Shown here piece by piece: positions 53,692-56,938 of a DNA stretch of 64,000 bases. Each line of letters opens with the position of its first letter. Position 1 is the first letter of the stretch. Location of the stretch: contig NC_045708.1 in assembly GCF_009834535.1 (NCBI RefSeq), forward strand, positions 18,104,001 through 18,168,000. Reading direction: 5' to 3'. Origin of the DNA: Camelus ferus (Eukaryota). The translations under genes were made by a program, and so were the position numbers. A model generated the notes under the pieces. That model was not told the DNA's origin and made no database searches. It was given only the letters and a program-made list of their open reading frames with translations.

Positions 53692-53775
53692 CTCCGCTCC
53701 CAGGTCCTCCTCAGATTCCCCACTCAGGGTCTGTAGTACTTTAGACTTGTAGGTTTTCCAGAAGGCCTGGTTCAT
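53692..53775 (-). CDS. C1orf232: C1orf232 coding exon 1
   Basis: gcagccATG; [28 protein letters not shown]|gtgggt. The four exons join to 552 nt = 183 aa plus stop. Confidence 0.88.
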
Positions 53776-54949
53776 GGCTGCAAGGGAAATGGGCCTGGCA
53801 CCCAGGCACGGGAAGGTGGTGGCTGAGTGGACACCCAGTAGGTCTGGCTCCAGGAACTCAGTGAGGCTCAGAGCCTGCCCCAGGGATCAGATGACTTCAT
53901 TAAAGATACACCAGCCTCCCCAGATGGCACAGTGCCCAGCAGGCGAACCCAATCCAAAGGAGTCTGTGGTAAGAGTCGGTGTCTGCCAACTTAGCCCCTG
54001 ATCTTGACCCATATTGGCCAAGAATAATGAAGACATCTCTCTCCACAGAGCCTCCTTCCTGGGCCCAGGAGTTCTTGAATTTGATCATTTGGAATGGCTC
54101 CAGAAAGATCCTCTTCCAGTCATGAAGTCCATTTACAAAGTCCTTAGGTTCAGGACCCACAGTGGTGTCCCTGTGACTATAGCTATATAGCTGTGCCCTC
54201 AACAGGGCCTTGCTCTATGTCCACACTCAGCCTCTGTGAAATAGAGTGGGAAGGTCCCAAGGCCCCCAGTCAGTGCCTTGGGCTTACATTTCACTGCTTT
54301 GTCTGGGCTGGAAACTGATTCCTCTCCCCAGGGATGCATGTGCCTGTCTCCCTGTTTCCTGGCAACACATTCCAAAAAACTAGAGCCCCTGAATTATTGC
54401 TGAGTTCCTCTGGTCAGCCTGGAAGGAACCAGGCTCTGGTGCATGGGGAAAAGCTCTCTGGCCCTCTTCCCACTGTGAGTACACAACACTTAGGTTGTAC
54501 CTCTGCATTTGATGCTAGCCCATGCCTGGAAGCCCAGGACTGAGAGAAAGGGGTCAAAGATAAGAGGTCTTTCTGTGAGTACCTCCTTTTCTTGTGAGAG
54601 GAGCTGACCCCTCTTGAGTCTGACAGGATTCCTAAGAACTGTGATCTCTGGGGAGGAACACCCCTCCTTCCCAGATTTGGCTGAGGGGTGGGGGTGGATG
54701 AAAGTTGGAGACCACAGGGAATAACTGGGGAGGGGTAAGAAGTGGTGAGGGCTTTATGAGAGACTAGAGGTATCTCGGAAAGTGCTGTGGGGGCCAGGAT
54801 TCCAAAACTTTGGAATATTCACTCTCATTCATTTATTAATATATTCGCATCACAGACATTTCTCAGTGCCTTCCAGAGATGTTTAAAGCACGCCCTCTCC
54901 AACGCGGAGTCTAAGATCTGGAAAGGGGTGAATAGGCCAGATTGAGATA

Positions 54950-55255
54950 GGTTGGGCCAGGTGGAGCGGGCAGGGCAGCGGACTGGCCTGAATCCCCCCA
55001 GGGCACGCACCGCCCCCCTGCCCCTCCAGCAACGGAACAGGATTCTCTGTGGGGCCCCGCCTCAGCTCCATCACTGCCGTCGACGGCCGCTGGGGGGCGC
55101 TCAAGGAGCAGCCCGCGCTATTGACGTCATCAGAGGCGGTCTGGCGGAGTCTCATTAGTCACCCGGCGTCACTTGGCGTCATTGATCAGTCCGGAAGCGT
55201 CCACACGTGTTCTCCTAACTAGGCTCTGGGACCCCTGGTCCCGCTGTCACCCTCC
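54950..55255 (+). promoter_or_regulatory. ZNF593: ZNF593 CpG-island promoter
   Basis: CTCF-like CCGCTGGGGGGCGCT 55087-55101, perfect CRE TGACGTCA 55122-55129, ETS CCGGAAG ~55191, E-box CACGTG 55204-55209. Confidence 0.75.
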
Positions 55256-55455
55256 ATGGGTCGCTCCCGCCGGACCGGCGCTCACCGAGCGCACTCCCTG
55301 GCCCGCCAGATGAAGGCGAAGCGGCGGCGGCCGGACCTAGATGAGATTCACCGCGAGCTGCGGCCCCAGGTTGCCGCACGGCCCCGTCCAGACCCGAGCG
55401 CCGAGCCCGACCCTGACCTGCCAGGGGACGGCCTGCATCGCTGTCTGGCCTGCGC
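55256..55455 (+). CDS. ZNF593: ZNF593 coding exon 1 (Bud20 orthologue, 60S biogenesis factor)
   Basis: [37 protein letters not shown]...GLHRCLAC+GC|gtgagt. Confidence 0.95.
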
Positions 55456-55690
55456 GTGAGTCCCAGCCGGGCCTGGCCTGAGGAAGAAAAGGGTCCGCGG
55501 TACGGGCCGGGGATGTGAGGTCCGAGCCCCGGGGCGCGCAGTGTCTCCTCTCCTGGGACCCGTGGGTCTGCTGGCACCCCATCCCTTCAAGCCTGGAGCT
55601 GAGCGTCAGGGAACGAACTGGGGTCAGGGAGATAGGCATATCTGAGAGGCATCACCTTCTCACTCTTCTCCTTACCCTCCATCCCTACAG

Positions 55691-55753
55691 GAGGTACTTC
55701 ATCGATTCTGCCAACCTGAAGACTCACTTCCGATCCAAAGACCACAAGAAGAG
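55691..55753 (+). CDS. ZNF593: ZNF593 coding exon 2
   Basis: tacag|(A)RYFIDSANLKTHFRSKDHKK+AG|gtatga; completes the C2H2 finger CLAC...H.....H. Confidence 0.95.
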
Positions 55754-55843
55754 GTATGAAGGAGTAGAAGAGGATTGATGGATGGGTGCCGGTTGGACAG
55801 GGCTGGCTTCTGGTTAGCTCTCAACTCCTATTCTTTTTCCCAG

Positions 55844-55985
55844 ACTGAAGCAGCTGAGCGTGGAGCCCTACAGTCAAGAAGAGGCGGAGAGGGCGGCGGG
55901 TATGGGTTCCTATGTGCCTCCCCAGTGGCTGGCAGTGCCCACAGAAGTATCCACTGAAGTCTCTGAGATGGACACGTCTACCTGA
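55844..55985 (+). CDS. ZNF593: ZNF593 coding exon 3
   Basis: cccag|(R)[23 protein letters not shown]...MDTST*; total 405 nt = 134 aa; AATAAA 56120-56125. Confidence 0.95.
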
Positions 55986-56473
55986 CATGGCCTGAGGATG
56001 CAAGGCAGAGGAGCTGCCCATGGACAATGATGCAAGGGCCAGGCTGGGAGAGACTGTGCCAGTCTCTCTTGGCCCTGGGTCTGGGATTTGGATGGCCTCT
56101 TCTGGGTGCCCTCCCTCCCAATAAAAGAACTGGATCAAGAAGGCTTTCCTCTGACTCTCTAACCTCCAGGCCACTCCCCAAAACTCCTGCCCTCCAAAAA
56201 TTCCTCTACTACTCCTGCGTGCAGGGCCCAGGGTGTCTCCTCCCGACTTGATCCAGCTTTGGAACCTGCATCCTTCCCTTCCCTCAGGGGTCCTGGCATC
56301 TGAGTTGAAGCCCCCAGTTGGAACCCAAGTGTGTGGAGGGGTAGGATCAGGTTTATACTATCCTGCTTCCAATGAGGGCAGGGACTGACCCCCAGAAATG
56401 AAGATTCCTGAGATTGTAGCCTCTGCTGAGTCACCTACCCCCCCAGGACCCAGGTGAGAGGCCGCCCGCTTCA

Positions 56474-56620
56474 TCATGGAGCCTGTGGCGGCCGCCGCTG
56501 CGCCACCATCTTCCAGACAGCATAGCAGGAGCCGCCCAGCCCGAGGACAGCCAGCAGTGCAGCCACAACCCCAGCCAGTGAACTCTGGGGCTCTGCCTTC
56601 AGCTCCCCGGCTATCTGCAT
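56474..56620 (-). CDS. ZNF593OS: ZNF593OS transmembrane microprotein, coding exon 2
   Basis: ctccag|[48 protein letters not shown] followed by a second TGA; 22-aa hydrophobic segment. Confidence 0.85.
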
Positions 56621-56893
56621 CTGGAGGTGCACAGAGGGTCCGCTTGAGGGGTCAGTTGAGACCACTGGGAAGGTGGGGAGTGGAAGGGGGCTGAGAAGCT
56701 ACTGGGGGAAGGAGATACAGATGCCATTGCTGGCCAGGGAGATTCCACCCCAATCCCTCTCGCTTCACTGCCCATCTGGGCCCTGGCTGCTCAGGCGGCA
56801 GGGAACGTGACAGCCTGGCTGCTGGGTGTCAACCCAGCCATGGTACGGGGAGAAAGGGGTCGGTGCCAGAAACTGCTGGTTAGGGGCGCTTAC

Positions 56894-56938
56894 CTGTAGC
56901 ACTCGGAAGTAGCCAGGGGTCAGGCGCCGAAATCGCAT
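56894..56938 (-). CDS. ZNF593OS: ZNF593OS coding exon 1
   Basis: Kozak cccaccATG; MRFRRLTPGYFRVLQ|gtaagc; phase-0 join to exon 2 gives 63 aa. Not in the ORF track because it is too short. Confidence 0.85.

Follow-up and report, generated by a model that had tools for sequence, protein, structure and literature searches.

The window analyzed here, a 64,000-nucleotide (nt) stretch of the Camelus ferus genome (NCBI RefSeq assembly GCF_009834535.1, contig NC_045708.1, positions 18,104,001 to 18,168,000; all coordinates below are those of the window), contains two small protein-coding genes on the minus strand, ZNF593OS and C1orf232, and, between them, ZNF593 on the plus strand. The outer neighbors are FAM110D, beyond C1orf232, and CNKSR1, upstream of ZNF593OS. 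A 9.5-kb segment containing the junctions in question matches a Camelus chromosome record (GCA_009834535.1) with 100% identity. The open reading frames (ORFs) of both minus-strand genes, 63 codons in ZNF593OS and 183 codons in C1orf232, are intact, with 2698 nt between the stop codon of the former and the ATG of the latter; the gene order and a stop-to-ATG spacing of 2.6-2.9 kb are kept in all placentals examined. An initial annotation of this DNA had suggested that the two ORFs belong to a single bicistronic transcription unit. Here we present the case that ZNF593OS and C1orf232 are two separately promoted same-strand genes that flank ZNF593 and optionally give rise to conjoined transcripts, an explanation that we consider reasonably probable.

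Gene organization of the locus

ZNF593OS has a core promoter and a short non-coding first exon at 57088-57139 (minus strand), kept in six placentals. Both promoter elements, TTTAAA at 57139-57134 and a GC box at 57124-57114, are present upstream of the gene as initially reported, and both are conserved. The first exon ends at 57088 with the donor CTG/GTGAGC, and the exon and its donor are used in a gene model of the bat Hipposideros armiger. The ATG exon (56894-56966, minus strand) begins after the acceptor ccacag preceding 56966, contains the ATG at 56938, and is followed by the donor CAG/GTAAGC after 56894; its 15 codons, MRFRRLTPGYFRVLQ, match ZNF593OS proteins. The last coding exon (56474-56620, minus strand) contributes 48 codons, including a transmembrane stretch, and ends with TGA at 56476-56474. 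It matches the 'putative transmembrane protein ZNF593OS' of many placentals with E values of about 1e-16 to 1e-26. The stop codon is followed by a pair of overlapping donor-like sites within 56428-56442, 35 and 39 nt downstream, and, about 117 nt downstream, by TATAAA at 56352-56357 (within AGTATAAAC), a variant that probably serves as the polyadenylation (poly(A)) signal of the gene.

The coding region of ZNF593 (55256-55985, plus strand) consists of three exons and encodes 134 amino acids (aa) with a zf-C2H2_jaz domain (PF12171); AATAAA follows at 56120-56125. The promoter of this gene lies in a CpG island (55550-54950) with an observed-to-expected CpG ratio of 0.80.

C1orf232 has four coding exons, all on the minus strand. 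Exon 1 (53692-53775) comprises 28 codons, with the ATG at 53775-53773 and the donor GAG/GTGGGT after the exon end at 53692. Exon 2 (52315-52398) also comprises 28 codons, and its acceptor is used in the rabbit X2 model described below and in mouse isoforms with alternative first exons. Exon 3 lies at 52106-52203, and exon 4 (50361-50646) ends with TAG at 50363-50361. The exon lengths total 552 nt, that is, 183 codons plus the stop codon, and the product is identical to the database protein P0001. In a Pfam search, C1orf232 matched TDRP with 22.7 bits, below the cut-off of 27, and ZNF593OS had no match; an Rfam scan of 49000-58500 likewise gave no match.

Splice signals between ZNF593OS and C1orf232

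The splice signals from which the bicistronic unit was deduced are all in place. The C1orf232 ATG is preceded by the acceptor-like sequence CCCATTTCCCTTGCAG/CC-ATG, with AG at 53779-53778 (exon start 53777), and a competing AG lies upstream at 53796-53795 (exon start 53794), so that two alternative 3' splice sites fall within 53777-53796 on the minus strand. Past the ZNF593OS stop codon are the donors GGG/GTAGGT (donor 1, last exon base 56439) and TAG/GTGACT (last exon base 56435). Splicing of either donor to 53777 would leave 37 or 41 nt between the two ORFs, in agreement with the predicted distance of about 40 nt.

These signals are weak. Under a rough scoring matrix, which is only indicative, the post-stop donors score 2.8 and 2.9 bits, compared with 5.0-7.1 bits for three real donors of the locus, and rank 7th and 8th among the 119 GTs between the ZNF593OS stop and the C1orf232 ATG; with the same matrix, the acceptor at the ATG scores 2.9 bits and ranks 10th among the 236 AGs of the interval. 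By motif strength, the donor-acceptor pair is no more than would be expected by chance. It is the comparative evidence that raises the observation above chance, because annotated models of other mammals make use of the orthologous junctions and because the AGs and the donor are conserved. All nine species compared have retained both AGs before the C1orf232 ATG, and donor 1 is kept in eight (camel, rabbit, rhino, horse, two bats, mouse and elephant). In the ninth, cow, an 11-nt deletion has removed donor 1; both post-stop donors are lost there, and C1orf232 is intact.

Junctions linking the two genes in public gene models

Protein searches with C1orf232 and ZNF593OS exons surfaced gene models of odd length that contain exons of both genes. 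Such models were found in Saccopteryx, Hipposideros (two species), Rhynchonycteris and rabbit, and models of three species were mapped onto their own genomes. In Saccopteryx bilineata (XP_066126130.1), GGG/GTAGGT is joined to ctgcag/CA-ATG, the AG at -2 relative to the ATG, and this junction is the exact ortholog of the camel 56439-to-53777 junction. The two Hipposideros armiger isoforms, X1 and X2 (XP_019505649.1 and XP_019505650.1), use two different post-stop donors, both joined to the AG at -19, ccag/GCCCGTTTTCCCTGCAGCC-ATG; the X2 donor is GGG/GTAGGT, and the X1 donor is the bat-specific GAA/GTGGGC located directly after the stop codon. The rabbit X2 model (XP_069935146.1) joins donor 1, GGG/GTAGGT, to exon 2 of C1orf232, and its N-terminus, MRKQAASQRGTG, is encoded from an ATG that overlaps the ZNF593OS stop. 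A protein of Rhynchonycteris naso (P0146, MMKCATSHLGPGEKAMNQ...) is compatible, judging from its sequence, with a Saccopteryx-type junction. In all three mapped loci (Saccopteryx, Hipposideros armiger and rabbit), ZNF593 lies inside the linking intron, as had been predicted for camel.

The long ORFs of the conjoined models translate the ZNF593OS exons in the wrong frame, which is the outcome of applying a longest-ORF rule to an RNA that truly carries two ORFs. Several further candidates were discarded or given little weight. The 168-aa Logan protein P0025 is a genomic last-exon ORF and was rejected as a transcript. The ATG that overlaps the ZNF593OS stop was considered as the start of a conserved N-terminal extension; this reading was rejected because mouse has GTG and horse has TAA at this position and the frame varies with the species and the donor. 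A 243-aa model of Moschus berezovskii begins with the ZNF593OS ATG exon, and about 75 residues in its middle could not be mapped on the cow locus, so that it is weak evidence.

The read-through junctions are thus already present in public annotation for some species. No paper describing them was found, and literature searches on C1orf232, ZNF593OS, Zfp593os and Gm30191 yielded no description of a shared transcript.

These models could be annotation artefacts, in which case the two genes would never share an RNA, and the motifs would amount to a chance donor and a good Kozak context within a conserved leader. Several observations are in line with this possibility: the motifs are weak and not top-ranked; the wrong-frame coding sequences (CDSs) of the bat models are typical of longest-ORF picking; the middle part of the Moschus chimera is unmappable; the entire 280 nt before the C1orf232 ATG is conserved, so that conservation of the AGs is non-specific; and no contig spanning a donor-to-acceptor junction was found among the RNA assemblies retrieved. 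Nevertheless, independent annotations of different species agree on an orthologous donor and on two acceptors less than 20 nt from the ATG. Furthermore, multiple isoforms are annotated both in Hipposideros and in rabbit, and the NCBI Gnomon pipeline normally requires transcript support for multiple isoforms. The 12-codon first coding exon of rabbit X2 is also an unlikely invention of an ab initio predictor. We regard a purely artefactual origin of the junctions as unlikely.

C1orf232 mRNAs with unspliced leaders

To the initial annotation, the exon containing the C1orf232 ATG looked like an internal exon. RNA assemblies from mouse, horse and vole do not support this view and indicate that C1orf232 does not lack a transcription start of its own. 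Two mouse Logan contigs from two runs (L008 and L009) match the mouse genome with 100% identity and have all three C1orf232 introns removed; upstream of the ATG, they continue for 476 and 371 nt, respectively, collinear with the genome, across the acceptor. The four horse contigs, from four runs (L010-L013), likewise combine spliced C1orf232 with genome-collinear leaders of 347-1662 nt. In a vole RNA contig, a 228-aa ORF runs from an upstream ATG (uATG) in the leader into the spliced CDS, implying that at least 123 nt are unspliced, and in dog and several rodent NCBI models the ORF also runs from the leader into the C1orf232 CDS. Thus, mature C1orf232 mRNAs in which the putative acceptor is left unspliced are found in three species.

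The ORFs that extend into the leader do not point to a conserved upstream coding region. An upstream ORF or N-terminal extension from the uATG at -125 was rejected because this ATG shares the C1orf232 reading frame in voles and dog, lies in another frame in mouse and cow, and is followed in camel by a stop after 10 codons.

One of the horse contigs, L010 (3771 nt), contains the ORFs of ZNF593OS and C1orf232, both spliced, together with the ZNF593 region. It was rejected as a single RNA: the two introns of ZNF593 itself are removed, which is possible only in an mRNA of ZNF593 sense, so that the contig must be an unstranded merge of opposite-strand mRNAs. It does show RNA coverage throughout the region between ZNF593 exon 1 and the C1orf232 ATG, and this coverage could come from a longer leader, from divergent transcription at the ZNF593 CpG island, or from unspliced read-through.

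In mouse RefSeq, there are curated C1orf232 isoforms with first exons inside intron 1. The alternative first coding exon in isoform 2 of mouse RefSeq (..ADSKDLRSCHTKKI..) has a homologous counterpart in camel intron 1, at about 53530-53460 (minus strand), where the reading frame has no nearby ATG. The homology suggests that a further internal promoter of C1orf232 might operate in some species.

A candidate promoter of C1orf232

The initial annotation correctly noted that there is no CpG-island promoter at the C1orf232 ATG: the surrounding 600 nt contain four CpGs, with an observed-to-expected ratio of 0.09. This was one of the observations from which the shared unit was deduced. However, a conserved, promoter-like block is located about 0.5 kb upstream. 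Aligning the upstream region of camel with six other placentals (seven in all), with eight species for the proximal leader, revealed two conserved blocks. The distal one (54276-54430, minus strand), 0.5-0.65 kb upstream of the ATG, contains no CpG and is 0.83-0.90 identical to its counterparts in the six other placentals. The proximal one, at 53975-53776, has identities of 0.80-0.86. The conserved proximal leader as a whole (53778-54040, minus strand), which is kept in the mature mRNAs of mouse, horse and vole, contains CCAAT at 54017-54013, the E-box CATCTG at 53926-53921, and TTTAATGAAG with a uATG at 53900, and is collinear with all six mouse and horse contigs.

The distal block contains an X-box-like motif, GTTGCCAGGAAAC (54366-54354), along with AGCAATAATT and CAC(G/A)TG. 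The consensus of the X-box bound by RFX factors, which are known regulators of hair cells, is GTNRCC(N0-3)RGYAAC, and GTTGCCAGGAAAC fits it at 11 of 12 positions. The motif is invariant in six of the seven species, with a single change in rhino. A relaxed X-box pattern has two matches in the window, where 0.25 would be expected. The 5' end of the mouse contig L008 lies about 17 nt downstream of the distal block and about 110 nt past the X-box-like motif.

The only other match to the relaxed pattern in the window is GTTGCCAAGGAAC at 42559-42571 (minus strand). The distal block also contains a conserved GT (AAT/GTAAGC, exon end 54288) that is lost in mouse; a short first exon might use this site as its donor.

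The reported expression of C1orf232 is consistent with a tissue-restricted promoter. According to the text of Mudge et al. 2019 (PMC6886504), who identified C1orf232 by PhyloCSF, the mouse ortholog has strong cap analysis of gene expression (CAGE) signal only in Atoh1+ hair cells of the inner ear, human C1orf232 has intron support only in brain and eye, and the 'Bicistronic?' field in the entry for this gene is empty. C1orf232 was not seen in Human Protein Atlas (HPA) tissues. ZNF593OS, for its part, was measured in a blood transcriptome (PMC11897311), so the two genes are reported in different tissues. Taken together, the conservation of the distal block, the X-box-like motif and the hair-cell signal form a coherent picture in which 54430-54276 is a candidate hair-cell or ciliated-cell promoter of C1orf232, with a putative RFX X-box that would link the gene to RFX regulation.

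Probable independence and age of ZNF593OS and C1orf232

The presumptive poly(A) signal of ZNF593OS is conserved in camel, cow, rhino, horse and bat, and is the canonical AATAAA in rabbit. The annotations of camel, rabbit and rhino list ZNF593OS as a gene in its own right, with a 63-aa product. Its protein is 75-90% identical across placental orders, and all matches to it are placental, whereas C1orf232 has homologs in reptiles, birds, amphibians and fish. C1orf232 is older than ZNF593OS and is therefore able to run under its own control. Both ORFs evolve under coding selection, as indicated by the cross-placental identity of ZNF593OS and, for C1orf232, by conservation extending to fish and by PhyloCSF. 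Separate transcripts of the parent genes are represented by C1orf232 mRNAs with their own leader and, in the case of ZNF593OS, by the poly(A) signal and the separate annotation. The supposed dependence of C1orf232 on a shared mRNA is further contradicted by the cow genome, in which the gene persists without the post-stop donors.

A model for transcription of the locus

Under the model that we favor, transcription of C1orf232 would normally begin at a promoter belonging to this gene, one that is conserved, poor in CpG and tissue-restricted. The block at 54430-54276 is the most likely candidate, and an additional proximal start is possible near the CCAAT and E-box motifs. The leader of its mRNA would be about 0.35-0.5 kb long and unspliced, and the apparent acceptor at the ATG would be mere leader sequence. 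Transcripts of ZNF593OS would normally end at the TATAAA/AATAAA signal of this gene. From time to time, or in particular tissues or species, and conceivably in camel as well, polymerase coming from ZNF593OS may escape termination, so that the weak donor (56439 or 56435) between the stop codon and the poly(A) signal would be spliced to the first usable downstream acceptor, that is, the -19 AG, the -2 AG or the acceptor of C1orf232 exon 2. The product, presumably minor, would be a conjoined ZNF593OS-C1orf232 RNA, whose 2.7-kb intron encloses ZNF593. Of the single bicistronic unit originally proposed, the donor/acceptor pairing stands, being used in bat models, with the rabbit donor joined to exon 2; the obligate character of the unit does not, given the unspliced leaders. 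Translation of C1orf232 from the conjoined RNA would involve reinitiation after a 63-codon ORF over about 40 nt, a process that is probably inefficient, and a bicistronic function of this RNA is hypothetical.

Several points weigh against this model. The RNA assemblies are unstranded, with the tissues not stated, and a minor spliced form would escape detection in them; they come from species other than camel. Transcript support for the gene models is deduced from a general rule of the annotation pipeline. The long leader contains six to eight uATGs without a conserved frame, which is awkward for the main translated mRNA. The horse contigs L011 and L012 reach the candidate promoter and extend past it to ZNF593 exon 1, so that the horse leader may start further upstream, at the bidirectional CpG island of ZNF593 or as unspliced read-through from ZNF593OS. 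Finally, how far the mouse CAGE peak lies from the ATG is not stated in the text of that study (PMC6886504).

The horse leaders bring up another explanation, namely, that transcription of C1orf232 begins at the CpG island of ZNF593, acting bidirectionally, which would make ZNF593, rather than ZNF593OS, the relevant partner. L011 and L012 indeed continue without a break from C1orf232 to a point 1662 nt upstream of the ATG, where ZNF593 exon 1 ends, and the island (55550-54950) has an observed-to-expected CpG ratio of 0.80. However, the mouse contigs end at -476 and -371, right after the conserved CpG-free block; the tissue-restricted expression of C1orf232 differs from that expected of a housekeeping-type CpG-island promoter (the breadth of ZNF593 expression being an assumption here); an unstranded assembly can bridge low-level intergenic reads; and there is a minus-strand AATAAA at about 54835 in the path of such a transcript. 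We consider a divergent origin of C1orf232 transcripts distinctly unlikely.

An obligate unit, in which C1orf232 has no promoter of its own and is expressed from a bicistronic mRNA (63-aa ORF, about 40 nt, 183-aa ORF) with ZNF593 nested in the intron, would account for the junctions in models of four to five species, the lack of a CpG island at the C1orf232 ATG, the conservation of the AGs (9/9), donor 1 (8/9), and the gene order and 2.6-2.9 kb spacing, as well as for the physical linkage of both ORFs in horse L010, but is highly improbable because the acceptor is unspliced in mature mRNAs of mouse, horse and vole, L010 is an unstranded merge lacking the introns of ZNF593, cow has lost both post-stop donors and retains an intact C1orf232, ZNF593OS has its own conserved poly(A) signal, C1orf232 predates ZNF593OS, the two genes are reported in different tissues, and mouse RefSeq includes further first exons within intron 1.

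A more elaborate version of the proposed model of separate promoters with optional read-through would place a conserved 'terminate-or-splice' switch in the 117 nt that separate the ZNF593OS stop from the poly(A) signal. Whenever the weak donor wins, a true bicistronic mRNA would result, encoding the transmembrane microprotein and, after about 40 nt, the TDRP-like protein; such an mRNA would drive C1orf232 where its own promoter is silent and would couple the three genes via transcription through the antisense ZNF593. We find this idea very doubtful.

Comparison with known systems

Conjoined genes, or transcription-induced chimeras, such as TMEM189-UBE2V1, are a class of read-through transcripts of adjacent same-strand genes. 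ZNF593OS and C1orf232 resemble them in being an adjacent same-strand pair in which the upstream poly(A) site would be bypassed and both parents have independent transcripts, and, in gene models, in the joining of a donor in the upstream last exon to an internal acceptor or, as in rabbit X2, to exon 2 of the downstream gene. Unlike in conjoined genes, the donor at the camel locus lies past the stop codon, so that both ORFs are intact and there is no fusion protein; the acceptor precedes the start codon by 2 or 19 nt and falls within an exon that otherwise serves as the first; and a third gene, ZNF593, is enclosed in the intron on the opposite strand. Overall, this is a typical conjoined-gene arrangement, which belongs to a common class and leaves general principles unchanged.

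In the classical mammalian bicistronic genes, SNURF-SNRPN and GDF1-CERS1, the bicistronic mRNA is the main or only form. The locus analyzed here would share with them two conserved ORFs in series on one mRNA, but separate mRNAs appear to be the main forms of ZNF593OS and C1orf232, and translation of the second ORF from a joint RNA is hypothetical. Another analogy is provided by ALDOA, for which PhyloCSF detected a 139-aa CDS in the 5' untranslated region (Mudge et al. 2019, PMC6886504, Supplemental Fig. S3D): in both cases, a short conserved CDS lies ahead of another conserved one, RNAs containing both are known (here from gene models), and the downstream gene can also be transcribed from promoters of its own, here a candidate one. 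For the upstream CDS of ALDOA, those authors report no transcript devoid of ALDOA exons (PMC6886504), whereas ZNF593OS has its own conserved poly(A) signal.

Both C1orf232, a TDRP-like gene reported in hair cells, brain and eye, and ZNF593OS, a 63-aa membrane microprotein, have been recognized only recently. What drives C1orf232 matters for the analysis of RNA sequencing data, in which reads from the leader or from read-through RNAs can be assigned to the wrong gene, for knock-out design in three interleaved genes, and for the interpretation of non-coding variants at the locus. The candidate X-box promoter offers a testable reason for the hair-cell specificity of C1orf232 and is a by-product of this analysis that is of more use than the read-through.

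Additional features of the ZNF593OS and C1orf232 introns and upstream regions

The coding intron of ZNF593OS contains a block of about 90 nt at 56815-56728 (minus strand; CCAGGCTGTCACGTTCCC...GGTGGAATCTCCCTGG) that is near-invariant in seven placentals, with identities of 0.89-0.93, and is better conserved than the coding exons of this gene. In some primate models (P0079), the block is an extra coding exon; in camel, there is a stop codon inside it.

In elephant and horse, ZNF593OS has further upstream exons or start sites. An 82-aa elephant model starts 5 kb upstream and overlaps CNKSR1 (elephant L005, 2209-7384), and the horse contig L010 (1-659) extends 650 nt upstream of the ZNF593OS ATG, with the first small intron unspliced.

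Intron 1 of C1orf232 contains, on the minus strand, a long A-run, aaaaaaaaataaaaaaaaaaaa, at 53250-53225, and, after it, several hundred bases of GT-rich sequence resembling a microsatellite (52500-53150); both are probably repeat-derived intron filler.

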